Part shown: positions 3,401 through 59,774 of the stretch, in pieces
Layout: each line of letters starts with the position of its first letter
How positions within the stretch are numbered: position 1 is the first letter of the stretch
NCBI RefSeq assembly: GCF_964204865.1
Contig: NC_135258.1
Span: forward strand, 10,540,001 to 10,604,000
Direction of reading: 5' to 3'
From: Styela clava
Taxonomy: Eukaryota
Length of the DNA: 64,000 bases
Notes under the pieces: generated by a model
Told to the model about the DNA's origin: nothing
The model's input: the letters and a program-made list of their open reading frames with translations, nothing else
The model's database searches: none
Translations under genes and position numbers: made by a program

Positions 3401-6400
3401 TATTATGGTATGTCCAAGTCTACATGATCAATTTTAATAACACTATTTATTACTGCACTAATATAACCTGCAATACTTCAATGCGAAACTAATTTGAGTA
3501 AAAGTTTTCAGGACATTGCATTTGACTCTTCCAAATAATCTATCAAAATCAATTCCACAATTATGACAAAATCGCTTATTAAATCATGCCATAGTAATAA
3601 CAGAGTTGCACATTTCTTTAATACTCATAGAAGCAAAAGCAGAAGTGTACAGCATTTGAACAAGACATAAAATTGGATTTGCTGTGCTCCAATCAGCATA
3701 GTACTACAGACATTTAGCATTTGACCGAAGCCACACAAACCCATTTGTGAATATTCTTAGTTTGTCAATGTTCAATCATTAGGTATAGGATAAATGTGGA
3801 ACACGGAATTGACTGAAATAAATGCTTAGTTAGATGGTTTACTAAAACCAAGTGCATTTGGGCAATATCTGCAACTTTAGTAACCTAAATTAGCTGACCT
3901 AACTGAATAAATTGTTTTCAATCGAAGGTGACAAATGTCAACATCGCACAACAACTGATACTTGTGCTTCAAATCCATGTCACGAAAGTTCAACTTGTGT
4001 AGAAGATGATAATTCATATAGATGTATTTGCCCTGAATCAAGAACTGGAACACAGTGTACTCGATGTAAGTGTTTCAAGTCTTTTTTTAGCAAACTTTTA
4101 TATGAAAATAAGCTACGGTAAGTTAATTTAATAGTATAACAAGTTTTTAAACGGTTAACTATGCAAAAAAATGTATTCTAATGATAAAAGAATAAGCCTA
4201 GAAAAGAATAGAATAATATAGTGTTGCTAAAGTTATAAAAGCATATTAATGATATGTTGCAGGTGGTACCACTGCACATATTCCAAGTATAACTCAAGGT
4301 TTCTAAGCCCTTACACCATAAATCAAATCTGGTCCAACATTGTAATCGATTTGTTTCCTCTATCTAAAGAGCTATTACAATATCACCATGTTTTTGTTGT
4401 TTTCAGTGGTTGCAGATTTGCCATTACCATCTACAATGGAGCCATCTTATATGCCAATGTTTGCTGGTGACTCGTATATCCAACGACCATCATTAGTTGG
4501 TGTCGGTACAAAACTTGATATTGAGATTGTATTCTATACATTCCAGTTAGAAGGTATGATTTTGGCCTTAGTGTCCAGATTGGTTATTTTAAATCAGCAT
4601 ATATATTTGCCTCCATTACTTCGAAAGTAGACTCGTGAATTTGACTCTGGCATACTTTATGAAATTTTAATATTAGATACCACACTCTCTTTATTATAGA
4701 CATTAGACATGCTATTATCCACATCATTTTAATGTATAGTATTTGAGACTATGCTATAAGGGACACATTCTCTATTTTTATGAGATACAAGTGTTTTGAT
4801 ACCATATCTTTAAATAGGAATTACAAGTCAAGTCTTCAAGTCTTGACTAACAAAGATAAATGACGTTGAAACACTATTTGAGTAAAGCTTTTCTAATTTA
4901 TAATAAACTCTAATGAAACATCAATTTTCCTCTTTGAATTATTCAATAATTGTGCTGATATAAAATTTTAGATTGTTGTTTTTTTTTTCGACAGGACTGC
5001 TCTTTTATAATGCACAATCAGATTCGGGCAAAGGAGACTTTGTTGCATTAAATTTAAGAGAGGGATATCTTGAATTTATGTATGATTTGGGTGAAGGACC
5101 GGCAATCATAAAGTAAGTACATTATGCACTACCCTGCCTTGGTAATACTAATATTTAATTAAATTCTTGTTATGATTATCAAAACGTGGTTGTTTCATCG
5201 TTCGTAAAATCTTTTGACCATTTTGTTCATCAAACATTTTTTTATATATTCAGGAGCACTGTCAAGGTTTCACTAAATGAATGGCATGTTGCAAAATTGT
5301 CTCGCATTATGAAGATTGGTGATCTTAAATTGGATGATGGACCCATCGTTAAAGGAGTATCACCGGTACAATGCTAATATTAAATATAAAATAAGCCTCT
5401 TTTGGACACTTCTTTTGTTTAAACATTTTATACATTTACTTTTCATGCTTGCTGAAGAGATCAAAGGCAAAGGTTTGTTGAATAGTGGTTTGATTTACTA
5501 CAATCTGATTACTGTATGTGATATAAGAGTCAATTTCGTGTTGTCCAATAGTACCATAACTATTCAATTTAATTAATATTTTCATTTATCTTTTGCACAC
5601 GTATTTTCAACTGAGTGAAATCTAATTATTCACCATAAATAACTTCGATATATACATGAATTCATGACTTTCTGTTAGTTTTGATGTTTATTTAAAACTT
5701 TTCACAGCACCGCCATTCCCAACTTAACCTGGGAAGACCATTATACATTGGCTCAGTTCCTGAATCTGTGACTGTTCCTCCAAGAACTCACATAACGACT
5801 GGACTTATGGGAGCCATTCAAAAGGTAGATAATGTGTCTTGTTGTTCAGTTAAACTATATTGATAATAACCTGTACCAATATGTGGTAAAACAGTCACCA
5901 TTAATTTACATCAAACAAAAGTAATTCGAGAATTAAAAATAAATTTTGTTTCATAGATAAGGAAATAAAGATTTTATAAATAAACATGATTATCTAAAAA
6001 TGTGTAGACTGATTGATACCTTGGTAGTTGAACGACTTGATATCCGAACAATTCGATAGTCGACCAAAAATATCTGGTTGATGACGTCATTGTGCACAAA
6101 AATCAATCCCATTGATCCCACAGAAATTTGCTCAAACAGTTACTGATATCAAATTTTTAATGTTTATCTTTATTAGTTTTAATCTTTATTATGCACACAT
6201 TTACATACTTATTATTGTTTAGTTACACGTTTTGTTAATATTTTCGGTATTTTGAAATGCGTAAGAACAAACTAAAAATATTACCATCGATTTTTATGGT
6301 GCAAAAAAGTTTTGATTCTCCAACAAGTCGGCAGTCGAACACTAATCCTGAACAAATTATGTTCGACTACCGGGGTATCATGGTATTTGTAAAATCAAAT

Positions 6401-9394
6401 TTAGTATCCAATATTCATTTAATGACTTCTCTTTGTTTATTCAAATTGAACTGTTAATTTAGAATCTAATAACTTTTACATCATTATGAAATCCATCTAA
6501 GGTTAGCTATGAGCTCTCATCCATTTACTGTTAGTGTGCCAACCTGACAAAATTTCATGCTCAAAATTTTCATTTCCCAAGAACTTCAGTTCTGTGGAAT
6601 TCACTACATCACACCGGTAGTTGTTTTCCTGGTCATATTGATATGAATCAGTGTTCACTAACACTGATTTCTACACTATAATTCGCTAGACTGTCAGTAG
6701 CTCTCAGTACTTCAGGGGTCACCTATAATTTCGATCAGAGATCAATCTCCTTTATTTTACAGTGTGTGACATTTATTTGAGCAAATTTTATCATATATTA
6801 TAGTTTGTTGTGAATGATGTTGAACTTCCGCGATCCCTTGCTGGAGAAAATTCAGAATCGTATCACATTCAAGCTTTCAATGGTCATGCCTGCTACAGAC
6901 AACCTTGTAACAATAATGGAGTCTGTGTACCAGTCCTTGGAAATTTTACCTGCACATGCAAAACTGGATATTCAGGGCAACTTTGTCAAAAAGGTTTGAT
7001 GAATTGTTTGATATTCATTTGGCATTTTAACATTTTACTTGAGGTTCATCAAAAATATGTCTTAGAGTTCTGTAATTAGAATGGTTGTGCATTTTCTGTT
7101 ATTTACATTTATCAGTACATAAATTTGAACATTTTTTTAATTCCCAGTTGAAAAGCCTGAAGAAATTCCAATGCTTCAAGACTCGACACCGCATGCAGTA
7201 TTTTTTGATGGAAGGGTCAAGGCACAATATAATAACTTCATCACTAGGAGGTAATTCATTTGATTATTTACTGCCGTTTATTTTTTTCATTGTACTCAGG
7301 TGATAAGATGCAGTTGCTTCAGTTATGGTCAGTTTATAAACTATGAAGTTTTCTTTAATAATTTATGGATAATTTTTGTATGCTAATTACTATCCTCATT
7401 ATTAAAAGTTGGTGTATTTATATTGTTCAATTTGTTTTGCTTTCAAAAGTGGAGAATCTGAAAAGATCATGAAGAAGTAAGAATATATTGTGTTGTTCAT
7501 TCTAATTTATGTGATTGATATACTGGTACTACTATATATGGGTAAAGCTATTTCATTTTCCGAAGTACCTTGTTGTTAAGATTTTTGTCATGCGAAATAG
7601 TTTTAAAAGTAATTATTGTATAAATTACATAATGTTTTGGGTACCTCACTTCAAATTGCAGGATACCCACTTCGACATGTAATTTCTCACATTGTTTTAT
7701 TTTGTAACAGGGTCAACTCATTAAAAAGCAACCACTTCGAACTTCAGTTGAAAACCACAGCTCACCATGGTTTAATATTTTATGATGGCAAAGCAACAAA
7801 ACGTGGCGATTACATAGCTTTGTCAGTTAGTTATGGCAGACTGCATTTAACTTTTGATCTTGGATCCGGTCCAGCCAATATTGTATCTGATTTAATGGTA
7901 AATGATGGGCTATGGAAAACTGTTAAAATTGTCAGGTAAGCTTAGGAATTAGGATACTTGTGTTTGTGTCTTACCCAATGATCGTTACCTACTGTTGTCT
8001 GTGCACAAGAATAAATTTAGATATATCTTGTTTTACATCATTGGTTGTCTACGACTTTTGTATCAGTAATCTACTCACTTCAGTTGACAGCTTGCAACTT
8101 TGCATAAAAATAGAAGGACTAAGAATTTCATATTTTACGACTTGTCTACGACTTTTGTATCAGTAATCTACTCACTTCAGTTGAAAGCTTGCAACTTTGC
8201 ATGAAAATAGAAGGACAAAGAATTTCATATTTTACTTGCCCAGCTATTGTCGAAGTTCTCAATGTTCTAATGATGATTTCTGCTAGAATAAATACAAAAA
8301 TGAGTAAAATAGATAGAAGTTTTGGGTTCCTTATTCTCAAAAACTTGCGGACTATACAAAATTACATTTATGAGAGGAAAAAGACATCATTCCATTTTTT
8401 GATGTGTTGGTTTTGCTATATTTGTAAATTATCAAACACATTTTCATTATTTTGCAGAAATGAACATCGAGCATCTCTACAAATAGAAGAAGGAACTCCT
8501 AAATTAGCATCTGCTCCACAACTCACAAAATGGCTAAATACTGAAGGAATGTTATGGCTTGGTGAGTGCACTGGAGTTTTAGCACATTTTCTGACATTCT
8601 TTTATAGTTATTACACAAAGAGTTCTTATATTCTAGAACAGGGTTACTCAACTGGTGGACAGCAGTCCGAATCCGGACCTTTGGAGTATTTGATTCGGAC
8701 TGCACCTAATTCTTTATTTTGATCATTAACCAAACTTTTGAAGTTTCATTTTATAAAATGACTTTTCTTGTTTTGAATATATCCGAAAAGAACTATATTA
8801 CCATAATAAACAATCTCGATTAGCTGATACTCATTAGCCGGTCGAGGAAGTGCGCATTTAAGGATGCCGAAATATAATTTCTGGAAACCTCGGACGGCCG
8901 GACCCAAATAATTTTAAAGTTTTGTATGCGGATCTTCTGTTCTAGAATGCGGTTTTGGTCTGTTTGCTATCACAAAATATTAGGTATTTTTCTTAATGTA
9001 ACATTTAACTAAACCGAAATATGTTGCATAGCAAGAAAGATGAATATTCACTATTTGCAATTTTATTTAACCTCTTAGTCGGAAATGATCAATTTAATTT
9101 AGCTGTTTAGTTTAATTTGATCTGCAGGGATTTGATCGGAATATACTAAATAAAATATGATAGCAAAAATCGATTCTTGATACCTTGTCATTCTTACCTT
9201 GAATTTAATTTCTATTCCAACTTGCAGGTGGTTGTGAAGCTGAATACATGCCACCTAGGCATCGAGGACTGACCAAGTCTTTTTATATGGGATTTGAAGG
9301 ATGCATCCGTAGATTCCGTATTGATGGAAATCTTTTACAATTACGAGAAGATGTGTTGAACAGACCCGGGTTAGCCACATGCCAAGACCGGTGA
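439..9394 (+). CDS. AGRN: Agrin orthologue, 3' portion (LG1-EGF-EGF-LG2-EGF-LG3); 5' exons lie upstream of the window
   Basis: GT-AG exons joining in frame: (439-525, 1107-1154 linker exons, less certain), 1542-1734, 2122-2230, 2570-2676, 3084-3209, 3286-3407, 3928-4065, 4407-4553, 4995-5112, 5254-5365, 5708-5824, 6804-6993, 7148-7250, 7711-7935, 8458-8561, 9228-9394 (TGA). LG3 reads [53 protein letters not shown] and ends [31 protein letters not shown]. These match agrin hallmarks (SNHFEL, GKATxRxDYxAL, TxGxLWLGG) better than pikachurin or perlecan. Confidence 0.9.
5458..5472 (+). CDS. AGRN: Candidate 15-nt agrin y-site microexon encoding RSKAK
   Basis: tacatttacttttcaTGCtTGCtgaAG|AGA TCA AAG GCA AAG|GTttgt. 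Phase 0-0, between ...KGVSP and HRHSQLNL, the position of vertebrate KSRK. The donor gtttgt is also used at 3210. Confidence 0.72.
6014..6380. mobile_element. MITE in agrin intron
   Basis: Terminal inverted repeats tgataccttggtagttgaac ... gttcgactaccggggtatca, with internal repeated tcgac/gaac motifs. Confidence 0.65.
7450..7476 (+). CDS. AGRN: Candidate 27-nt agrin z-site microexon ([16 protein letters not shown] instead of ITRR-VNS)
   Basis: tttgtttTGCtttcaaaAG|T GGA GAA TCT GAA AAG ATC ATG AAG AA|GTAAGA. Phase 2-2, no stop, strong donor, located in the intron just before SNHFEL. Confidence 0.7.
8045..8235. repeat. Direct tandem duplication of ~97 bp in agrin intron
   Basis: Two near-identical copies starting ttgtctacgacttttgtatcagtaatctactcacttcagttga at ~8045 and ~8142. 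Confidence 0.9.
8639..8939. mobile_element. Non-autonomous hAT-type MITE
   Basis: Ends cagggtt...cttctg, flanked by a perfect 8-bp duplication ttctagaa (8631-8638 and 8940-8947). Confidence 0.75.
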
Positions 9395-12215
9395 CACAGC
9401 ACTTTAAATCATGTCATCATAGGTACACGTGTGTATAATAAAGTTTCAACCATGTTGTAATATCAAACAGACACGGATAGCATTGACATGACACAGTGGC
9501 AGGGCAGCGATGCCATTCAGTACATCATCCCGAACCCCGGGATGTCAAAAGGTTTTATTTGAACGAAATAATAGTTCGTCTTACACCTAGTTTTTTTCGA
9601 ATTTTAAAATATGACACATGGAAGAGGCCGTTTATTTGTCTGCCCATGTGTTTGTTATTTCTGAGTCTAAGCATTGTGTTTGACACGGACAGGCAACTGG
9701 ACAGGAGTTGCCGCAAGTCTTAGCCCTATGAATTTTTCTTTGAGTCTGGCATAAATATGATAATGCATTTATTTATTTGCATGCATATATGCATATAAAT
9801 TTATTTGAATGTGGATTCTATTGAAATTTTTGAAACATATTTACCGGTAGATACATAACGTTTGACATCCCCAACATATCCCGAAAGCAACTCAATGTTT
9901 TTATTTTCTTATATTTTTGTGAATTTTATGCGACATTAACAACATGCACTATTATGTTAACAATGTAGACACTTAATCTTGTGTTTTGAAGTCACGATGT
10001 GGCACATTTTGTTTGAAAATTAGAAAATTAATTTTAGTTTGTCATGATTGCTTGCATATTTTATCTTAGAATTATTAATTTTTTTTCTCATTTTTCATAT
10101 TTTATTACATTTTTAAGACACTATTTCAGGTACAGTTCCATTTCTGAATTATAGATGTTGGTATGATTCATGTCAAAATGAAGCTATAAACCTATCAGAA
10201 AAATTAAACACAACTTATGAATTAGAAACGTAACATTAAGACAGTGTAGTAGTGGTGTGGCACATTCCATGTTTTAACAGACCTGAACTGAAGTTATGAC
10301 AATTTCCACCTTATAATATTCCACTCAACTTGAATAATAGGTCTCTGATAGCTAAATCCTATTTCCATATTGGTAAAAATGAATCTTCATAGGTGACAGA
10401 CTAATGCATGAACTTATCTTTGTCTAGGCATCTTATCTTTATACCTCACTGACAATATTTATAATTAAGCTGTCCTACTACTAATATGATTAGCTCCCTA
10501 TTCCATATCACTGCAACTGTAAAAGGTTTGAAGCGAGAGCAGCTTTAGCGTCTTAGCCTAATAGTCTAACTCTATTATATGGGAATATCCACATAAAAAT
10601 AAAAGTATAATGCCACATTCCACTATCCCAGAAAGACACAACTATTTTTTTATTTCTTTGGATTGGTTAGTATTGTTTTTATTAATAATTTTCGTGCATA
10701 TTATTTAATAACATCATCTGGTGCAAGATTGAAACAGTCTCTGAATAATTACTTTTTGGCAAAAACATTGATAAGTTTACATGCAGATAATGTAAAATAA
10801 GATTCGATGTCAACATTGATCTGGAACTTTTTAAAAGATTCCGGTTGTTGAATTTCGGTTGTATGAAATACATATGGCGATTTCGTTTTTGAACTATTGA
10901 TTTAAATTCAAGTAATAGTGATAAAATCTACTCATCCAAATATTCAGCATATTGTTTTTGTTATTCTGCTTAAAAATAAATTTTATTGAGTCCGTATATT
11001 GATGTTCAGTCTTTGATTGGTAGTCATTTTAGTAAATGTTGACTTGTCCTTCAAAGAAAAAAAAGACGTGTCGCGAAGTCTATCATATTTTACACAAAAC
11101 GCTATGAAACCCATAGGAATTTCGTTCAATAAATATTTCTTTATACAATAGTGATGCATCGCCATCCAAACGAAAATCTGATTGCGATAAAACGGTCTAA
11201 TCACATGGCGAAGCCGGTCGGACTCTATTCCGGGTTACCAGTCTATGTCGCGCATGGATTAGTTAGCCATTCCAGATTCCCGATTTTGAAACGTGAAAAA
11301 AACGTAAAATTAATGGTAATTTTCACGCGTAACGGCGCGCATTAGAATGTTTACGTCTTTCTACGCGCATTTCTGTCGGAAAAAGTAACATTTTTTGCAT
11401 TGAGGGGGGCGTGTGCAGTAATAATTAGAGGTGTGACGTCATCAAAATTGTCAATTGAAGCCTTGAACTTATAAATTCGGTAAATAAAATCGTGAATTTT
11501 AGAGTAACCATTCTTGCTATAATAGTGGTTTTGGTGTTGTTCTGTTGGAAAATAACACAAGAAAACGTTGGAATAAAATTAATTAATTACGAATAATTAT
11601 TAACCCTCTACTAGACACAAAATATCGCAAGTTCAATGGAATTTTGGAATTTTGGCTTATATATAAAAAAAAATTTTTTAAAGGAGTGCGTTTTTCATAT
11701 ATTGCTGAATAGAACTCTAGCACACGCTTTAAAAAAGCATGATTGAATCTTTAGAGCTTGATGGTTGACAAAAAAATAACCAATGTAAAATGGCACCAAA
11801 CCGACCGGCTGTGTTGTGTAAAAAAATATTCAATTCATGACAATTGAGAGAATTTAATTTTATTTCTATATTAATTCCATTGTGTTCAACGTAACTCGCT
11901 GTTGCCTCGACTTACGACAAAATAAAAGCATTACTATTAATCTGTGGACAAAAAAGTGAAATAAACTGCCCGATTATGTTTAGTTTTGATACCTATTTTT
12001 ACGATCTTGCGAATTCGTTATCGCTGTTAGAGATTTACTAAAAAAACGGAGAGTAAAATTTAGTACAATAAAAATACGCATGACGTGCAGTATATATAGT
12101 AGTATATCGCAAATACGTATTTATCGCTTCGAAATCCCCCCGGAGTGTCTCCTGAAACAGTTATCGCGATTATGCCACTCGTTAAACGAGTCAGAAGAAT
12201 TTTTCGGCTCATAAT

Positions 12216-12565
12216 GGATAGGATAGGATAGGATTTATATATTTATCCCGGGGGAGAGGAAAGCCGATAAGACGGCTTATCCATATGGCGAACCACGGCC
12301 TCTCGTCCGGTTACCATTCCAAGTCGGGTATGGGATTAGTTTCACTGTATTGTTTGTTTTCGGAAGCATGGACTTGGTGGTGGAGGAAGCCGTAACCGAC
12401 CAGCGGTTACGTGAACCACCCAACGACGGCGAGGAGTCCAGCAATCCTCTCGCACATAACCATCCCTGCATGGGATTCGAACCTGCGAACCCACGCAGAG
12501 TAATTAGAGGTGCGGTGGCGAGCGTATTCCTAACGCTTAGCCCGTTGAGCCACACCGCCGCGCCG
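12216..12565 (-). mobile_element. tRNA-derived SINE, well-preserved copy
   Basis: Minus strand has A-box tggctcaacggg, B-box ggttcgaatcc and a 3' tail of (atcct)n. Homologous copies occur at ~27227-27547, ~16714-19431 (split), ~24500-25710 (split) and ~18255-18375. Confidence 0.85.
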
Positions 12566-13458
12566 CATGTATTCAATCCATGACCGATAGGGCCATATTT
12601 AAAATGTCTCGCTTTATTAATTGAATTATGTTAAAATCAATTAGCGGTTACGTCGAAAAAAAAGGAACATTACTTTTCTAAAATATCACGGCCATGTGTG
12701 GTAGAGTGCCCAATTATTTCTTGTTTTGATTCTCATTTTTTGATTTCAAGATTTCACCATTAGAAAAATATGCGATAAAATCCCCAGGAGTAAAATTTAT
12801 TTTAACATGATAAAAACTTTGATTGAACATACCTTGCATTAATTATCTTATTTTTCATCTTTATCCAGGAAGAAGTCGCATCTGACCAATTCGGTGGTTG
12901 TAGAATGGTTCAAAAGATACTTCCCGCCGATCGGACGTTTTTCAGTGGCGGTATGGTTTCCAACGCCAGCCAATCATTTTGTGTCGCGATTTACAATGTC
13001 TTAAAACTCGTTTTCAATCTGTCGCGCCCGCGGCCTTCAAAAACGAAACTTAAAGTGTTTTCCGTTTTATTTTTAGTATTTTATAATGCTGCTTTTCCAT
13101 TCAGAAAATTTTGGTTGGAGATTCATGGATTCATTCTCCTTTATTTATCGTTAGCATCTGGTCGCTGATGATTGTTATATAATAAATCGTTTTTCTCACG
13201 TTTTCACAGTGTCTGTGCAAGAACAATGATAAGTAGCCTAATCATCATTGTCTTCGTGGCACAGGGGCACAGGGCATACATATTTCGAAAGAAATTAGGG
13301 AGTATAAACACTGTGTAAAGGTGTTTATGAACCTAAATAACACATCGAGCTGACGAAAAAAATCGGAGATTTTAATAAAATGAAATGAGAAAGAATGAAA
13401 ATGAAAGAAGCATGAAAAGTGAGATATAAAATGCTTACATAAAAGTATTATGTAGTAC

Positions 13459-19000: not shown

Positions 19001-20228
19001 GTCAAAGGTCGGAGGAAGGTCCATTCAGTGAATCGTTTCGCGTGTGATAATCGCCCACATGATTCAAGCCTGCGAGTGCACACAGAGTACAGAATCAAGT
19101 GCACGATGCGCCGAACAAAAGCAGATTGCGCGAAATCGCCCCCCTATCGCCCCCTTCGACTTTTTCGCCCCCCTCTGTGTCATCTTCGCCCACCGGGGGG
19201 CGATATCGCCCACTTTGGGAATCACTGGGCCAAATCGTAACTTGGCTGGTACTGTTAATGTTAGTGACCTGGTAATATACTACTACATAACTTTCTAAAA
19301 CGGTTTGCTCGTTGAGGACTCATTTAAACGCTCCGCGGACTCATTTGAGACCGCGGACTCGGGTTGGGAAACACTGCCCTACAGGGATTGGTAATCGGAC
19401 AAGAGGCCGTGGTTCGCGAATTGATAAAGCCCCCATTAATATTGCAATATTGTCATGGGTGTTTACAACGTATTACAGAATCTTGCGATGGCGTGATATA
19501 CAAGAAGAAATGTTATTTAGTTATAGTTCAAAAGATGACTCTCGATAAAGCCAAGACCCTATGCAGATCTTTTAACGGAAAAATGGCAGATATTTACTCT
19601 CTGCAACATTATGATAAAGTAATGGGATATATGTCACAACACATGGATGCTCACCACTACGAAATTCTTCTCGGAATGAGCTTCAATCCAACGGTTTGTT
19701 ATGATATTGTAGTGTTTTGTTAGAATGTATAGAAGAAGCAGATTGGGGAATGCGAATTCCTAAAAATTTGCAGTTAGTTGTTTTTGATTTTTTTTTCGAA
19801 ATAGTTATCTTATAATGCCGTCTTCGAAAACCGATAAACAACATAGTGAATATTTCAGTTTTTATGCAAGCCACAAATTATGACATCAACAAAATTTCAC
19901 ATATAAAATAGCTTCTCTCTTCCACATAATACCGTGTATAATACTGTACACATTGCTTAACTTAGGAGAGTATGTTTATTCCATTGCTGGGACAAATGTA
20001 GTAATATAGGCTCATAAATAACACAGCACTTCTACACAGACCTCAGAGGTTCGTTTGGATGACGGAAGACCAGCTCCCTACGTTAACTGGTTGAGCGGAT
20101 GGCCATCTTTAATTTCTATCAAAACACAAATGTCAGTTCGTGTTAATAACGATGCATCACTCTCATATAAAGGAATGTGGAATCAAGAAAATTCCTACAA
20201 GTTTCATGGCGTTCTTTGTGAAATATGA
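16084..20228 (+). CDS. Secreted collectin-like protein, copy A (signal peptide, short Gly-X-Y stretch, coiled-coil neck, C-type lectin domain)
   Basis: Exons 16084-16333, 16550-16645, 19479-19693, 20040-20228 splice in frame. Motifs: GRMGKAGLRGPPG; KIDELEAELVNSVDDIKNTLKTL; CDGVIYKKKCYL..AKTLC..GKMADI; NWLSGWP..GMWN..HGVLCEI*. AATAAA at 20613 and 20682. Confidence 0.88.
16940..19376. mobile_element. hAT MITE inserted into a SINE in lectin A intron 2, carrying nested elements
   Basis: TIRs cagcgtttcccaac / gttgggaaacactg, TSD ccctgcat/ccctacag. The shorter version in copy B is 24727-25649 with TSD ccctgcat/ccctacat. Confidence 0.8.
17752..19227 (-). mobile_element. Nested hAT relics specific to lectin copy A
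   Basis: Ends aggtggttcccaaact / tttgggaatcactg. Minus-strand relics FPTSYMVxKGFS..KQRNRL (~17950-18060) and SMFGSTYLCEQLFSKMK (~18660-18720). Another TIR caggggtcggcaa at 18378. Confidence 0.72.
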
Positions 20229-24600: not shown

Positions 24601-27007
24601 CGACGACAATTCCACGATTCCAGTCGTCACTTGATTGTTCACGTAACCGCTGATTGGTCACGGATTCCCCCATCAAGTACATACATATGAAACAACTGCC
24701 TGGTTAACTATAAACATACCCTGCATCAGCGTTTGGTCGCGGACTATTTTCTCACCAAAGAAAATATTTTCGGACTTAACGTGCGTTAATTTTGTAATTG
24801 AACTCTGAGTGAAGAAGAAAAATAAAATAAAAAACAACGGAATTTTACCGATGTCAGTTTATTATCCACATTTACAAATTCCGATGGGAGCCATAGCGAT
24901 GGTGCTCCGTCATTAAGAACTGCTCGCTCTGACAAACTTTAAATATATTACGCGATCACTGGCGACGATTCGCTGATTAAAATGATAGGATAGATTTTGA
25001 AGCTGAAAAGTTCCAAATAAACTCATTATTATCTTTCATGTCGGCTTTAATTATCTTTATTGTTTTCGTAAAATTGAAAAATTAACAATATCTTTACGGC
25101 TGACTCCTGGATTCGTTGATTTTTTTCTGTTTGTATTTTTCTGTGTTACTTTTGCTTCAAAACATAACCTCTGAAATATTGTTTCTGAGTATCCGTTAAG
25201 ATCTGATAGAATTCACTTGATGGTATTTCATGACACAAATATAACACTCAACTTTATATAAAAAATTTTAACTAAGCAAAAGGTTCGTGTAGACTCGTGT
25301 ATTTGTCAGAATTCCGCAAGTGCGTTGTGCAATCCAATCGTTTGATTCAGAGAGGTGCCATTTACGTGTCATGTCTAAGTCACGTGTTACCAGGTATTCT
25401 AATGGTTAAATGTTAGAGTATTTTGCCCAGCCCTACTCAGTAATCGATAATTATTGACTCTATTAATTAATTAATTAATAAGTCTAGTAAAAACGTTCTC
25501 GACCCCCAATGAATTTCGCGACACTAAAAAGCTTAGTGACCTAGTGATATACTACTACATAACTTTCTAAAACGGTATTGCTCGTTGAGGACTCATTTAA
25601 ACGCTCCGCGGACTCATTTGAGACCGCGGTCTCGGGTTGGGAAACACTGCCCTACATGGAATGGTAATCGGACAAGAGACCGTGGTTCGCGAATTGATAA
25701 AGCCGTCTTAATATTGCAATCTTGTAATGGGTGTTTTCAACGTATTACAGAATCTTGCGATGGCGTGATATACAAGAAGAAATGTTATTTAGTTATAGTT
25801 CAAAAGATGACTCTCGATAAAGCCAAGACCCTATGCAGATCTTTTAACGGAAAAATGGCAAATATTTACTCTCTGCAACATTATGATAAAGTCATGGGAT
25901 ATATGTCACAACACATGGATGCTCAACACTTCGAAATTCTTCTCGGAATGAGCTTCAATTCAACGGTTTGCGATGATATTGTAGTGTTTTGTTAGAATGT
26001 ATAAAAGAAGCAGATTGGGGAATGAGAATTCCTAAAAATTTGCAGTTAGTTGTTTCTGATTTATTTATTTTTTTTTCAAAATAGTTATCTTATAATGCCG
26101 TCTTCGAAAACCGATAAACAACATAGTAATATATCAGTTTTTGTGCAAGCCACAAATTATGATATCATATTAAAACGTAACAAAATTTCACATATAAAAT
26201 GGCTTCTCTCTTCTACATAATACCGGGCATCATACTGCACACATTGCTTAACTTAGGAGAGTATGTTTATTCCATTGCTGCAATGCTGCCTAGGACTAAT
26301 GTTATAATATAGGCTCCTAAATAACACAGCACTTCTACACAGACCTCAGAGGTTCGTTTGGATGACGGAAGACCAGCTCCCTACGTTAACTGGTTGAGCG
26401 GATGGCCATCTTTAATTTCTATCAAAACACAAATGTCAGTTCGTGTTAATAACGATGCATCACTCTCATATAAAGGAATGTGGAATCAAGAAAATTCCTA
26501 CAAGTTTCATGGCGTTCTTTGTGAAATATGATAGACCTCTCGACATGGCACACGATTTTCTTTGAAGATTTACAAGAACTCCGACAAAGACCGAACATAA
26601 AACTAAGGACTTAACAAACTTTATTTTCAAGCATTATAACGAAAACGGCGCTCCCGAAGTATGTGCATCAAGATGGCGCACAACCTGAACCCTAATCTGG
26701 TACAACTACTATGTTCAGATTGTGCGCCATCTTGGTGCAATACTTCTAAAGGTCCACGAAAACAGTATATATGCCGAATATTTAGATGAGTAGATTTTAT
26801 CACGAATATTTGAATGTAATTTGTACAAATTTCAACCGCGGCATTCTATTAAGAGTTCCAGAGTGATATTGACGCCCAATTATATTTAGTCTAATCAATT
26901 TCATGCCAAAATGTAAATAAAGGCAATATTCCATTTTGTTTTACCACATGATAATATTATATAACATGCACAAAATTTATTAATAATAAAAACAATACTA
27001 ACCAGTC
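21540..27007. repeat. Segmental duplication unit 2 of the lectin locus
   Basis: Partner of 13459-20704, with the same order of inverted remnant, hAT MITE, spacer and lectin gene. Confidence 0.92.
23920..26531 (+). CDS. Secreted collectin-like C-type lectin, copy B
   Basis: Exons 23920-24169, 24337-24432, 25751-25965, 26343-26531. Exon lengths equal copy A (250, 96, 215, 189 nt) and the frame is open to TGA. Confidence 0.88.
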
Positions 27008-44300: not shown

Positions 44301-46451
44301 TTAGAGAAAATAAAAGTAATAGCCTTCAATGCAGCATTTCCATTTCGAACATGATATTTCTATCAAGAGGAAGGGATTTTTTTCACCGACGACAACAAGA
44401 AACTAGCAAAATGATTCACACCGTGTGCTAAAAAACTTATACTTGCTTTTTGTGTTATTCAGGCACTACAGACTATGATGATGTATTAGAATGTGAATAT
44501 TATTCACCAGACCTTGACCAATGGACAGCTGTAGCTCCTATGTTAACGGGGCAGAGCGATGTGGGTGTAGCTGTATTCAAAGAAAAAATATTTGTTACTG
44601 GTGAGTTTAAGAGGCTTAAAGCTTTTTCCAATGTTAGACAATTTTTTAGGTTTCATAATAGTCTTCTTTTTATGTTTTTTTGGAGAATTTCAGGCTTTAT
44701 TATTATATCCCTTATGATATATATTTTGGATCACATTAAGTTTTCCCTCAAGCCGAAATATGTGATTGACGGGATGTTTAAGGAATTGGTCAGGGATCAT
44801 TTTTTTCAGTATACACATATTAAAAGTTTCTGTTTGTTCTGTTTGTTCTATACCAAGCAGGTGGCCAACCTGCTTCCGACCACGATCCGACTGCACACAA
44901 AAAATTCCAACGCTGCCAATAAGAAGGCTTTGTGGGCACACTATTATTAAAATCGACACAAAATTTGTATTTTTATTACACAAATGCAATTTCCTCAGAT
45001 CCTCAAAATGTGATAAGCTAGTTTAGCTCCACTGCGATTTATCTATATATAGTGTGGGAAAAAAGTAGGGTAACAGTTATTAAATAACTTGTTATCAATG
45101 AATATTATCCTACTTTCGGACAACCCTGTATATATCACGAGCAATAAATACGTTGCCCAATATCCAACCACTAATTGTTTTCATTGGAAGGACGTGGGAC
45201 GTGGTTATGTACAAGTAGATTGCTGAATGTATTGCAGACAAGTTAGAAATAGGCTCTAAAATTCATTAACATTATTCATTAACGATTTCTAGGAGGATAT
45301 TCATGGAACAATCGATGCATGGTTGACATCGTACAATGCTATGATCCAGAGTCAGATAAATGGAGTAAAACATTTTCTCTACCTGCCGCGCTTGGTGGGA
45401 TTCGAGCGTGCACTTTAACTGTGTTGCCACATTTTACGCAACCTCAATGTATAGTGGAAAACAGCACCGGAAGTCCAGTAACAATGGATAGTTCAATGAG
45501 TAAGTGTGACACTTTTTTAACTTTTCCTGTTTCTTTTTTACACAAGGCTATTTTTGCAAGAATTTGTGATATCTTCTCTGAAATATTTGTGTGAAAAACA
45601 AGCATATTTTGAAGATTATGAAATATTGATGTACTAATCAATTTGAAAATTTGAATATACATGTTGCGAATATTTAATTTAAAAAGCAAAAATTGCAATG
45701 TCATGACTTCAAACTCTTTCTCCCTGTGTATTTGATTTATAAAACGGATTGAAGAAAATAGTTTTTTTTTAAAATACTTAATTATTCTATACATTGAGTT
45801 TTTCATATGGAATTAACCATACCCAGGGCCAGATCCCATAAAATTTGGACGCCTATAATGGTCTCGTAACTTCTTATCATGTAGAATTTCGAACAAAACC
45901 TGAATATGTTGGCATCACAGGTTATTTCTCCTCCGGTTTACTCTTAACCGATGTCGATTGGAGTAACTAGTTTGATAATTATTAAGATAAATGCTGATTC
46001 AAAAGTGATTTTTCAGTTATTAATTTAGGGTGAAATAACATTAGTTTAATGAGAACACTGTTGTTAGTTCAACAACAAATTGACTATTCATGATTGTTCT
46101 TGTGTCCCCTGTTCCTCACTTTATTCTGTATATATCCACTGCTTCTGTGTGCGATCACTAGCTAAAGAACAATTGAGAGTTATTCATTATGTTTTTACAC
46201 TCGTATTCTATGTCACAAAATAGCATTGCCTGCATATTGCTTTCATGCAGCAAGTTTAAATCTCATTTGAAGTTTTCTGTATGTATATTTTTCTGCCATG
46301 ACAAAAAAGTTATTTAGAGCTATCTTCACTTGCAGGTGACCTACCAGGACCAAGCAACAGAGATGATAACGTTGGCCAACCAGTCGACAGACCTAACCCA
46401 AGACATTCAAGGCAAAGTTTAAATTTTGATGTAGATATGGCAGCTGTTTAA
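29344..46451 (+). CDS. KLHL13: Kelch-like protein, KLHL9/KLHL13 orthologue (BTB-BACK-Kelch, CUL3 adaptor family)
   Basis: Exons 29344-29380, 30188-30385, 31590-31780, 34374-34562, 34726-34869, 35402-35546, 36404-36503, 37931-38104, 40835-40971, 42782-42887, 43866-43951, 44463-44600, 45293-45499, 46336-46451 (TAA), with compatible phases. [53 protein letters not shown] and [15 protein letters not shown] are characteristic of KLHL9/13. First and last exons are less certain. Confidence 0.92.
29466..29862. mobile_element. MITE in kelch gene intron 1
   Basis: 16-bp TIR gcgtagcataacaatt / aattgttatgctacgc, plus subterminal inverted aatcctaaccc..cccatctgacta / tagtcaggtgggggttaggatt. Confidence 0.8.
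32866..33068 (+). mobile_element. ~200-bp MITE family, copy 1
   Basis: ccaatatggaggtagctaatt...ggggtatattcacttggctaacacagacagtcccc...aaccctaacctggtacacac; homologous to 36092 and 46626. Confidence 0.8.
36092..36296 (+). mobile_element. ~200-bp MITE family, copy 2
   Basis: Same family; imperfect TIR gtgtacca / tggtacac. Confidence 0.8.
41153..41410. mobile_element. hAT MITE
   Basis: TIRs caggggtgggcaaatt / aattgcccaaccctg; degenerate TSD atataaag/atatagtg. Confidence 0.72.
43005..43474. mobile_element. hAT MITE
   Basis: Perfect TIR cagtggttcccaaact / agtttgggaaccactg; TSD gtctgagg/gtctaagg. Confidence 0.88.
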
Positions 46452-49801: not shown

Positions 49802-52493
49802 CATAGGCGTAGCCAGAGGGGGCCATGGCCCCCTCCAAAAATTTCAAGAATTCCATTCCTAATCCACCAGTTTTGTGGCATCGTGTCTCGTCACGCTTGC
49901 TGATTGTCATTGTTATGTCACAAAGACTTGACCGTTCGCTCTTATGAGCAGTATGGGAAAGACTTACTTTCGCAAGCTTTCGGTCAGTTACTCGATCTTG
50001 ATTTGTTCTCGCCGGATTTTTATTCGAAACGCTTGGATTTTGATGACCAAATTACTTCGATGGCTAAATTTAAACAGGCGAAATTCGATAGTTTTGTTCA
50101 GCGAAATAAAGACTCGCTTTCCTCAAATACATCAATAAGCGCTTCTCAGGCTGTGGATGCACCGGTTACGTCAGTTACGTCTATCACTTCTATTCCCGAA
50201 GATGAACTAATAATCAACGAAGGGAAAACAAACGATCTTGGATTTATTCTTAAGAAACATACACAGCTTACCGATGCGGAGAGATACAGGCTTCTAACTT
50301 CGGATGGTCCGAAAAACGTGACGATTCTGGATACTGTTAGACAAAGTCGTCGTAAATTTCTCAAAAAATGGCTTGACGATAACAGATTTTGCAGTTGGTT
50401 AGTTTACACCCAACTCTCTGATGGGGGTGGTTTGTGTAAGATATGCATAGTCATGCAAGCACGTTTGAAGCATGGAACTTTCAGGGACACTGCCTTTGTT
50501 ACAAGACCATGCATTGACTACAAAAAATTTATGGAAAAGGCTGTAGCACACCGAGACACAAATTACCACCGAGAATCAAATATAGCTGCAAAAAATTTTG
50601 TCAAAAGCATGGAAACTGGTCAAAATGTGCGTGCAAACATGGAGGCCCAATATGCTACGCAAACAAAATAAAACAGACGAATAATGACTTCCATTGTTAA
50701 GACTGTCATGTTCTGTGCTTCGGGTAACATACCCTTGCGCGGACATTCCGGGGATAGTGGAAATTTTGTGAACCTTCTTCTATTTCGTATCGACGCAGGG
50801 GATGAAGATTTGAAAAGGCATTTCGCTCGAATGGCCGGAAACGCTAAGTATACAAGCCCGATGATACAAAATGAAATTCTCAAGGTAGCAAGCAACATGA
50901 TAGTGCAAGATATCGTTATGGAGGCTAATAAATCGTTTGTGTCCGTGATAGACAACGAATCATGTGATATTTCTGGGAAAGAACAACTAAGCATCGTTTT
51001 GAGGTATGTGAAAGGTGGTGAAGTGTGCGAGCGCTTCACAGGATTAGTGGAAATGGATTCTGTTTCTGCCGAATCAATTTCCTCAAATATTTTAACCCAC
51101 CTCTCTGGTATAGGAGTGGATTTGCAAAAACTTGTGGGGCAACGACAATGGCAGGTCACGTCAGCGGTGTGCAAAAACGCATTCGTGATAAATACCCGCG
51201 CGCAATATTTGTGCACTGCGCTTCTCATTGTTTGAATTTGGTCATAAATGACCAAAGTAAAGTTGCAATCATCAGAAGCACCTGTGATATCATTCGTGAG
51301 ACTATTCGTTTTTTCAGGGAGAGCCCTTAAAGGCGCGCGGGTTCAGGAATTAACATCCCTTTGTTCTGCCCCACCAGATGGTCTGAGAAGTACATGAGCA
51401 TCCGAATCTTCAAATGCAACTTCAAACGAGTACTTGAGGCTCTTGATTCTTTGGCGAGAGAGGCTAACAGTGAGACGCGGGCGAAGGCTTTTTCTTTGAA
51501 ATCTGCTCTAGAAAAGTCGTCGGTTATCTACGCCGTATGTTTGATTGGACGATATTCGGCACTAATGGAGCCACTAGCGCGCGCACTTCAGGCGGTCGGA
51601 GTCAGTAAAGAACCTCACATCCTCTCTTCAGAGCGTTATCGCTGAAGAACGCAATGACTCTGAAATCGCATTGAATATTTACAAAGAAGCTTGTGAAATA
51701 GCTGGCTTGAAAGAGTTGACAATACCCAGAGTAGTCGAAGTACAAGTTTATCGCGACAATGTCTGTGCTGATTCAGCATCCCAGTATTTTAAACGTTCCG
51801 TATATCTCCCATACGTCGACGGCTTGAGCTGCTCTATTCGGGAACGCTTCATTGACAACCCATCATTTTTTTCATTGCTATCAATTCTTCCACCGAACAA
51901 ACCAGTTCACGTGGATGAGGTAGAGCGTCTGTATTTATTGGATAACCTCCAGAATGAAGTGAGACTGTGGAGAACTTCTTTAAGTTCCGACGTTAACGAC
52001 GAATGTTTGGATGGGCTTCTTCTGAGCGCTCGAGATTATCCAAGCGTGTAAACCGCAATACAGATCGTTATGACGCTACTAGCAACCACCGTTGAGGCTG
52101 AGCGGTCTTTCTCATGCATGAAACGGGTAAAGACATGGCTGCGCTCATCAATGACGTCCAATCGCCTTTCTGATTTGTGTGTGCTTCACTGTCACCGTGA
52201 AATGGTCACCGAGAAGAAAATTAATCGAGTTGTGTCGAGCATAGTTGGCGGGAAGCGAAGGATGGACTTTTAATCGGGGCTATGTATTTTACTTATTCAA
52301 ATTGCGTTGTTAATATTTGTTGTTTCAAATAAAAAATTGTTTATTAATGGATTTTGTATTCACAAAAATCCAGCTGAGTAATTGAATCAGTTTGCTTGTT
52401 GACCAACTGTTGTTGTTTTGCGCTTGAAGAACGGGTGTTTTAAACCCAATATAATTTCTAAAATTTTCAAATTTTGGGCTGGCTACGCCACTG
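49802..52493 (+). mobile_element. Full-length hAT DNA transposon (~2.7 kb)
   Basis: TIRs cataggcgtagccag / ctggctacgccactg (13/15 match); perfect 8-bp TSD aagagtaa at 49794-49801 and 52494-52501. Confidence 0.95.
50060..52273 (+). pseudogene. Inactivated hAT transposase (ZMYM1/THAP12-like: TTF-type zinc finger, DUF4371, hAT dimerisation domain)
   Basis: Motifs WLVY..GGLCKIC, IPLRGH..GNF, YTSPMIQNEI, ESCDISGKEQLSIVLRYV, VHCASHCLNL, CPTRW, AERSFSCMKRVKTWLRSSM. In-frame stops at 50669, 51328 and 52049; frameshifts at ~51140 and ~51605. Confidence 0.92.
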
Positions 52494-58108: not shown

Positions 58109-59774
58109 TTTTTTTTTTTTTTTTAAATCGGATCAGAACAGCACTACTGGATCCAGCCCAACGCCTTCATTTCCTGGTAATGCCGATGGAAGCTAATCAT
58201 TCATTTACCTTTATTTAAAAGGTTTGATCCATACCACGTGATGTGGTAGACCTCCAATCATCATATCCGTTATTTTTAGATGGTATTTCATGTTTTTTTA
58301 TCAATAAAATGGTTTGTAAATATGGCATTGTGCTCTTTATTTTGGGGATAAATCCTGTAACATGAGGCTTCTTATATACTTTAAGCAATGGCATACCGTA
58401 ATGGTATTTTTAAGTTACATGGTCTTGATAAAAACATTTTTTTTTTGAATCAGTCAAATTTCTTTTTTTTTGTTGTGCCTCGTTACTTTTTGTTATATCC
58501 ATCTTATGTTCGTGCTTCGTAACCCAATATTTCTTTCCAATTCGTTTTAAGCGTTATGTTCTTTGTTCCATCATATGTTTCTAATTGAAGATCAGCAAAT
58601 TCTGCCAACTTTCTTATGACGTCTGCACTGATTTCGTCATATTCTCTTTTATTTAAATTTCTGTTCAGTTTATCTAACTTTCGTTTCATTTTTATTATTC
58701 TAACTTTCAATATCTGAAGACCTTTCCAAATCAACAGCTTATTTGTACCATCGTATTGATTTGTAAAAACGGTTTCTTTAGATAAAATGATGTTTTGTCC
58801 TGTTATAATTCGAAATTTGGCCTCCATATCCCTTATAATAGAATTTATCACAGTACAGTTTTGAAATATGTGTTTTGTGTCATCGTTTCCAACCCCACAA
58901 AACTTACATTTAACTTTGATGCCTTTAGTTGCTATGTATGCTCTATATCCGGTGTTTTTTTTTCTTTTCTACATAGAGAAATCCTTCTTTTCTGATTCGA
59001 TAGGAAATGACTTTTTCATAGTTTCATAGCCCATTCCGTTTCTTGTGCTTTCGCAGTTTCAACTGTTTTGTTATTTCTAAACAAGATATATAACTTTTTC
59101 AAATTCATGTCTCCCCATTCCTCTTTGTTCAACTTGATTGTCTTTATTAATTCCAATGAGTTAGTCCATTTGTTAGGTGCTTTCATAGTATGTGGCATTG
59201 AATTGGTATAGAGATGATTATTCAGTGTCCGAATTCTTGTTCCCAAACTATACAATGCCTCAAAATGCCAGAATTGAGACGGTTTTTCAATGATGGCTAG
59301 TTTTGCAACTTTTTCAGTTTTACATGAGTTTATTTTTGCTTCCAGATCAATTGTTCTAAATCCACCATGAAGTTTGTTTTTTTGAAGTTCAGTTCTCTTT
59401 ATTACTTCAAATGTTTCGGGGTACCATAAGAATTTATAGATGATGGCATTAATTTTCATTATCTGCTCCTTGGATACTGCTATTGTTCTTGCGCTGTGGA
59501 GAATTTGGGATATAGCCAAAAAATTTATTATAGTGTTTTTACCATACCATGTTAAATTTCTTGTTTTGCTCATATTCAATACTTTTGTGATTTTTGAGAT
59601 CTTCTCGTTCCATGTTAAAGTTTCTTTGTTTTTACCAAAATACACTCCTAATATTTTTATATGATCCTTGATATATCCTTTATATTTTGTATTATTCACC
59701 ATATCCATTGCTCTTTTGTTTATGCATAATATTTCCGTTTTATCTTGGTTTATTCTTTGACCAGTGGCTAATCT
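58109..59774 (-). mobile_element. 5'-truncated non-LTR retrotransposon (L1/Tx1-like ORF2 C-terminus) with poly(A) tail
   Basis: ATGQRINQDKTE..IKILGVYFG..RNLTWYGKNTIIN..IYKFLW..GGFRTIDL (ORFs 59016-59708 and 58504-58851). A T16 run at 58109-58124 is the poly(A) on the minus strand. Absent from the duplicate copy at ~63270-63365. Confidence 0.88.

Follow-up and report, generated by a model that had tools for sequence, protein, structure and literature searches.

Does the agrin gene of the tunicate Styela clava harbor a microexon of its own at the position where other chordate agrins are known to hide theirs? This question is raised by a stretch of 64,000 nucleotides (nt) from the genome of this species (NCBI RefSeq assembly GCF_964204865.1, contig NC_135258.1, positions 10,540,001 to 10,604,000 of the forward strand; hereafter called the window, whose numbering is used throughout), in which a segment of 27 nt at 7450-7476 had been predicted to encode a z9-type insert at the agrin z/B site. 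Splicing at the z site is a classic RNA switch, turning a ubiquitous matrix protein into a neural signal by which acetylcholine receptors are made to cluster, and every chordate lineage examined carries cassette exons in the respective intron of the agrin gene (PMC12445529). As laid out below, the gene and the intron are indeed those of the agrin z site, and the default product skips the segment. We consider the segment itself a plausible lead and an unconfirmed candidate isoform, and assign a probability of about 45% to its being a real, default-silent cassette microexon of the neural type.

The identity of the host gene is apparent from several lines of comparison. The plus strand between 1,500 and 10,800 represents the 3' half of a gene with the domain order LG1-EGF-EGF-LG2-EGF-LG3, as judged from Pfam matches and exon reading; the Pfam domains next to the site in question are Laminin_G_1 in exon 7711-7935 (E 7.6e-13) and EGF in exon 6804-6993 (E 2e-08). 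Among solved structures, the top single-domain match of the 74 residues encoded at 7712-7933, the core of LG3, is human agrin LG3 (55 bits, with the window peptide paired to ALQSNHFELSLRT), followed by the crystal chains of rat and chick agrin LG3, and this core exon is 47-51% identical to vertebrate agrin. The upstream exon of 33 residues is too short to match agrin among solved structures on its own, and its homology was established by alignment with natural contiguous agrin proteins. When 1.84 billion representative proteins were searched exhaustively and without a profile, the top named whole-protein relatives were three tunicate agrins (Ciona savignyi, C. intestinalis, and Clavelina lepadiformis), with those of hemichordates, amphioxus, and lamprey ranking behind them. 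The nearest relative of all is an unnamed transcript-derived fragment (P0013) of 60% identity, which represents the z0 form; neither a closer relative nor an isoform with a z insert was found among these representative proteins, and the species' own proteins are apparently missing from the collections searched. Word-index searches with P0013 and the Clavelina agrin did not add any further tunicates, and no relative turned up when metagenomes were scanned with three aligned tunicate LG3 exons. Because of the order of the LG and EGF domains, the agrin LG3 as best structure match, and the tunicate agrins as top relatives, the gene is regarded as the tunicate agrin orthologue.

The intron in question separates the two exons encoding the beginning and the core of LG3. 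The upstream exon terminates with ATC ACT AGG AG, encoding the end of YNNFITR plus the first two letters of the split codon, and is directly followed by GT at 7251-7252, while the downstream exon opens with G GTC AAC TCA; skipping of everything in between therefore yields the z0 protein (ITR-R-VNS). The resulting z0 junction of the window, AG/G GTC AAC TCA TTA AAA AGC AAC CAC TTC GAA, may be compared with those of the mouse cDNA, GAG AG/T GAG AAA GCG CTG CAG AGC AAC CAC TTT GAG, and of the cloned Ciona cDNA, GCA AT/T TCT CGT (both from the supplement of PMC12445529). All three junctions are in phase 2, and a comparison of the cDNAs shows that the distance from the junction codon to the sequence S-N-H-F-E amounts to five residues in both the window and the mouse. 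In an alignment of natural proteins, the insert of a mammalian protein is found at this very site, NAVTES[ELTNEIPVPDAPDSGALPS]EKALQ (ELTNEIPV...), and isoforms of Branchiostoma occur with or without ESNSIREQ at the same place, NAINKR[ESNSIREQ]EPNQD. Since phase and residue position coincide with those of the mouse and Ciona z0 junctions, the sequence comparison identifies intron 7251-7710 as the positional and phase homologue of the vertebrate and Ciona z/B-site intron, and the original prediction was right in placing the segment at this site of agrin. An origin of the intron from a repeat or transposon was rejected, because it has a single match in the 376.8-Mb genome and is thus single-copy.

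The segment 7450-7476 reads TGGAGAATCTGAAAAGATCATGAAGAA, is preceded by tttgttttgctttcaaaag, and is followed by gtaaga, exactly as predicted. It is free of stop codons and in frame with the phase-2 intron, so that its inclusion would add a net nine residues according to local translation; being short, a multiple of three, open, and flanked by AG and GT, it has the basic form of a z cassette microexon. Its body consists of 20 purines out of 27 letters (74%) with repeats of the GAR type, the 20 letters upstream of 7450 contain 14 pyrimidines, and a UGC is found at -12 to -10. The donor GTAAGA may be set beside the confirmed donors of the gene, among which GTAAGT, GTAAGC, and GTGAGT are the best and GTTTGA, GTACAA, GTAGAT, and GTAATT also occur. 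Neural microexons of the SRRM3/4 (eMIC) type are at most 27 nt long and have a UGC beside a U-tract, no more than about 15 nt away from the 3' splice site, their acceptor being weak and their donor strong, a grammar reportedly set out in work from 2014 (Raj) and 2019 (Torres-Mendez). Signals of this kind, i.e., the UGC near the 3' splice site, the pyrimidine tract, and the strong 5' splice site, are all present at 7450-7476, and as far as can be read from the letters the candidate resembles the SRRM3/4-type microexons in its length, in UGC plus U-tract, in its weak acceptor, and in its strong donor.

A view on the remainder of the intron and on the genomic background shows which of these features deserve attention. 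Intron 7251-7710 contains 15 in-frame, stop-free segments between AG and GT, or 18 if GC donors are allowed, and because so many are present in a single AT-rich intron, frame preservation and openness alone are not special. Among these 15-18 candidates, only 7450-7476 unites a GTAAG donor with a UGC and a pyrimidine tract upstream, and it alone encodes a hydrophilic, loop-like peptide, whereas all others are rich in F, I, L, and Y. In a scan of 244 kb of the same genome on both strands, comprising the window and 18 random 10-kb stretches, segments of the candidate's class occurred at 0.01-0.16 per kb-strand, a count which takes in genuine short exons; this corresponds to a chance expectation of 0.004-0.065 for the 420 nt of the intron that could be used. 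Allowing for thresholds set after inspection of the candidate, its signal combination lies roughly at a chance level of p ~0.01-0.07.

Nine RNA-like runs of the species, which belong to three studies and are available as Logan assembled contigs, match the gene. Of the words of 4900-10800, 30-41% are present in each run, a share which fits the exons plus a long 3' untranslated region. Four of these nine runs, X1 and X4 (study P1), X2 (P2), and X7 (P3), were placed on this region, and in each of them one long contig joins the exons 4993-5112, 5254-5365, 5708-5824, 6804-6993, 7148-7250, 7711-7935, 8458-8561, and 9228 to beyond 10800 (coordinates adjusted to GT..AG), with word depths of the agrin exons of 43-131 across the four runs. 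The sole junction at the z site in these main contigs is 7250/7711, the z0 form. Exactly 103 letters separate 6991 from 7709 in the contig records of all four runs, which leaves no room for a concealed insert of 27 nt. No joints from 7250 to 7450 or from 7476 to 7711 are found in the contigs of the four runs, nor do any of their listed loose ends lie at 7250 or 7711. The z0 form is therefore the dominant product in the RNA contigs examined. It should be kept in mind that assembled contigs lose minor variants, that a rare, neuron-restricted isoform could escape in this way, and that the sampled tissues are given in coded form.

The same runs also contain low-depth contigs covering intron 7251-7710 itself. 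A contig of 439 nt in X1 closes on itself by a joint from 7689 to 7251 ("goes back 439"), and X4 shows a joint from 7688 to 7251 with a T replacing A7689; such joints mark a lariat whose branch has been read through. The lariat comprises the whole, unsplit intron, from which it follows that the intron is removed in one step as the main pathway. Relative to the exons, the word depth of the z-site intron is about 17% in X1 and X4, and about 2% in X2 and X7. Depth over the gene's remaining introns is low or near zero in these four runs. The z-site intron, or its lariat, therefore persists to an unusual degree, and the excess of its sequence in the contigs, as expected of a slowly or specially processed intron, was also counted for the microexon.

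Several of these observations weigh against a cassette microexon at 7450-7476, namely the exclusive z0 junction, the 103 letters between the neighboring exons, the missing joints to and from the segment, and the one-step removal of the intron. To these are added that the AAG acceptor is weaker than the CAG or TAG found at all seven of the seven confirmed acceptors of the gene, that the YCAY (Nova) sites downstream of 7476 do not cluster in the 234 nt scanned (six sites, or 2.6 per 100 compared to 1.5 per 100 in the window), that the scan thresholds were set after the candidate had been seen, and that the encoded peptide contains neither an Asn nor an N-x-I/V/F motif. The main rival reading is that 7450-7476 is a chance pseudo-exon. 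In this case, a run rich in A and G within AT-rich intron sequence would happen to lie between AG and GTAAGA and to be open in the correct phase, would never enter the agrin mRNA, and would belong to a species which makes only z0 from this intron or has lost z splicing. We regard this explanation and the microexon as about equally likely. In favor of the pseudo-exon, we weighed most the absence of the N-x-I/V/F shared by z exons of vertebrates, amphioxus, and Ciona, in addition to the skip junction and whole-intron lariat as the only RNA products seen, the weak acceptor without a YCAY cluster, and the many in-frame AG..GT segments judged by post hoc thresholds. However, a chance origin has to contend with the rarity of the signal combination (even with real short exons included in the count), with an exon-like purine/GAR composition and a hydrophilic peptide unlike those of all other candidates, and with a location in the single intron which is known to conceal microexons in chordate agrins. 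The prior for a real microexon is high for this last reason, since every chordate lineage examined has them in the z-site intron, and a second candidate at the homologous y site, encoding RSKAK in comparison to the vertebrate KSRK, was also counted for the microexon. Of the predicted z9-type insert, the sequence, the site, and the Asn-free peptide have thus stood up to the analysis, but an inclusion junction has not been found, as the contigs of the four runs all read 7250/7711.

The persistence of the intron might alternatively point to a regulatory decoy, with the segment 7450-7476 binding U1 and U2AF and thereby slowing or stabilizing the processing of the intron without ever being included. 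Such a role would agree with the z-site intron alone having sizeable contigs in the four runs and with the buildup of its lariat in X1 and X4, but contig depth is a poor measure, a connection between the segment and lariat stability lacks direct evidence, and the preservation of the frame would be a coincidence; we therefore take a decoy to be improbable. Even less can be said for a different z exon in the same intron, such as 7601/7610-7633 (the SNYCINYIM form), which would encode N-Y-I. Among the in-frame AG..GT segments of the intron, N-x-I/V/F is encoded by this group only, and the gene makes constitutive use of weak donors such as GTTTGA. Yet their upstream tract is purine-rich (9 pyrimidines in 20 letters), their donor is GTTTTG, their hydrophobic peptide with an unpaired Cys is typical of translated AT-rich intron sequence, and no junction involving them is present in the contigs of the four runs, which makes such an exon highly improbable.

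The z microexons of Ciona agrin, which the original prediction had mentioned, are in fact published: Z6 (MPNDFRD, with the motif N-D-F) and Z5 (QLSDN) have been cloned from Ciona robusta (Hossain et al., 2025, PLoS Biol, PMC12445529). Their inclusion is neural and Nova-dependent, z0 being the form outside neural tissue, while an exon has been predicted in amphioxus and none were found in sea urchin or C. elegans; Ciona is treated as the only tunicate in that study (PMC12445529). The candidate from S. clava is similar to Z6 and Z5 in belonging to a tunicate agrin, in its location within the same phase-2 intron of LG3, which separates N-x-[IVF]-x-x-x from the NHFE/NNYE exon, and in representing a very short, frame-keeping cassette absent from annotation. 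It differs from them in several respects: the Ciona exons measure 18 and 15 nt compared to the single 27-nt candidate of the window, Z6 encodes N-D-F whereas the candidate lacks any Asn, and the peptides share no similarity. Moreover, the Ciona exons were cloned and are Nova-dependent, which sets them apart from SRRM3/4-type microexons, and they are followed by 18 YCAY sites compared to the six unclustered ones in the window intron, whereas the candidate is known from its sequence and has not been seen spliced.

The vertebrate exons Z8 (ELTNEIPA) and Z11 (PETLDSRALFS) occupy the homologous intron position and phase, and the insert of the candidate would fall into the same rim loop. Their neural inclusion has been demonstrated, in contrast to the candidate, which has not been seen in spliced form in the four runs. 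Z8 is established to contact LRP4 through its Asn and Ile (cited in PMC12445529). In an alignment by eye, the N-E-I of Z8 is opposed by E-K-I in the candidate, which like Z11 lacks N-x-I. Structures of the agrin LG3-LRP4 complex are deposited as 3V64 and 3V65. The z exon of amphioxus, ESNSIREQ, is likewise a single cassette of the 24-27-nt class at the same site, which is present or absent among the annotated Branchiostoma isoforms, but it encodes N-S-I and has annotated isoforms, neither of which applies to the candidate.

Translation of the segment confirms the prediction of an insert without Asn or N-x-I, but this only excludes membership in the Z8/Z6 class, as Z11 and Z5 are also devoid of the motif; if real, the candidate peptide resembles the motif-less Z11/Z5 class more closely than Z8 and Z6. 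Should 7450-7476 be a genuine microexon, the z-site intron would by default be removed whole via the 5' site at 7251 and the branch A at 7689, leading to z0 (ITR-R-VNS), and the segment, with its weak AAG acceptor, U-tract plus UGC, purine-rich body, and strong GTAAGA donor, would be silent by default. Inclusion would then be limited to a small population of cells, presumably neurons, and would thus be invisible in bulk assemblies. In these cells, a charged loop of nine residues would be placed into the LG3 rim loop which carries the Z8 and Z11 inserts in vertebrates and the Z6 and Z5 inserts in Ciona. Without N-x-I/V/F, this loop could not dock into the propeller pocket of LRP4 in the manner of Z8, and might either be the counterpart of Z11/Z5 or act as a spacer beside the constitutive N-N-F-I (YNNFITR), which is encoded by exon 7148-7250 and adjoins the z site. 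The constitutive motif beside the z site is conserved, and its function is unknown according to PMC12445529. The original prediction had likewise suggested, purely by inference, that the interface with LRP4 might differ or that the insert might reposition this constitutive N-N-F-I. That the candidate might be the sole z exon of the gene, be included in motor neurons, and make agrin synaptogenic by its Asn-free charged loop of nine residues appears unlikely to us.

The coordinates of the features at and around the z site are collected in Table 1.

Table 1. Features of the agrin z-site region of S. clava, in window coordinates.
Feature	Position	Strand	Evidence
EGF-like domain exon between LG2 and LG3, constitutive	6804..6993	+	Pfam EGF; contig pieces 6802-6991, cut +2, in X4 and X7
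LG3-start exon, constitutive, phase-2 end AG, holds N-x-F/I	7148..7250	+	103 contig letters in four runs; translation; agrin alignment
z-site intron, 460 nt, GT..AG, phase 2	7251..7710	+	joint from 7248 to 7709 (cut +2), main contig of four runs
Putative 3' splice region: pyrimidine tract, UGC at 7438-7440, AAG ending at 7449	7425..7449	+	sequence reading
Candidate 27-nt cassette microexon, (S)GESEKIMK(K)	7450..7476	+	sequence reading; not linked by any contig joint in four runs
Putative 5' splice site GTAAGA	7477..7482	+	equal in quality to the gene's top confirmed donors
Branch-point A (ctcAc), located 21 nt upstream of the 3' splice site	7689..7689	+	contig joints in X1 and X4
LG3-core exon, constitutive	7711..7935	+	structure match; Pfam; contig pieces 7709-7932 with cut +3

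Some further observations concern other parts of the agrin gene. A 15-nt in-frame segment at 5458-5472, AGATCAAAGGCAAAG (RSKAK), is located in intron 5366-5707 between the sequences GVSP and HRHSQLN and represents the candidate for the y/A site mentioned above; it matches the vertebrate KSRK in position and basic character and is flanked by the acceptor tgctgaag and the weak donor gtttgt. Its inclusion is not seen in the contigs of the four runs, in which 5365 is joined directly to 5708 (y0). The model of Ciona intestinalis agrin in UniProt (F6ZH24; P0002) reads GTSPVSNMIQHSFLDL in LG2 instead of the GTSPSQHSFLDL given in the sequence of PMC12445529, a difference which is possibly due to a y-site cassette of Ciona, itself containing N-M-I. 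The same model keeps intron sequence at the z site, ISTHTLNLKISISFFFLFSSRAR. The scan for segments of the candidate's class also returned a segment of 48 nt at 1107-1154, whose acceptor is CAG, whose donor is GTAAGA, and whose pyrimidine tract is strong; it probably represents a real short exon of agrin, located upstream of LG1. Within intron 8562-9227, the stretch 8643-9036 shows word depths of 126-767, many loose ends, and partial contigs in the four runs, which suggests an expressed repeat or transposon fragment unrelated to the expression of agrin.

Outside of the agrin gene, the window contains two near-identical open reading frame (ORF) pieces about 6 kb apart, at 19364-19723 and 25585-25995 (CDGVIYKKKCYLVIVQKMTLDKAKTLCRSFNGKMA.IYSLQHYDKVMGYMSQHMDA), which have the appearance of one exon, duplicated in tandem, of a lectin-like gene; neither of them has a significant Pfam match. 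A short GC-rich element is shared by 12277-12583 and 25585-25700, both of which translate to PTWNGNRTR.RGS, and may be a repeat similar to short interspersed nuclear elements; ARAGORN did not detect any transfer RNA genes in the window. The run of long ORFs at 49904-52051 (+) contains a DUF4371 domain (E 2e-18) and is typical of domesticated or decaying hAT/ZMYM1-like transposases, an ORF of 230 residues at 59016-59708 (-) resembles a retroelement fragment and has no Pfam match, and an exon with a Kelch motif is located at 44450-44620 (+).

The existence of z-site microexons in tunicate agrin is already published, and what the segment 7450-7476 would add, if real, is another tunicate and an Asn-free peptide. 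The view that z splicing pre-dates the vertebrates, based since 2025 on the exons of Ciona and the predicted one of amphioxus, so far rests on one tunicate genus, and a z-site cassette in a second, distantly related tunicate would show how rapidly these inserts evolve. A motif-less cassette, if real, would also test whether N-x-I/V/F is obligatory or whether the adjacent constitutive N-x-I/V contributes to the activity. In case such an insert by itself rendered agrin synaptogenic, a z insert could act by reshaping the rim of LG3 instead of supplying an Asn for docking to LRP4, for example by exposing the constitutive N-N-F-I or by creating a modification site at S-G-E.

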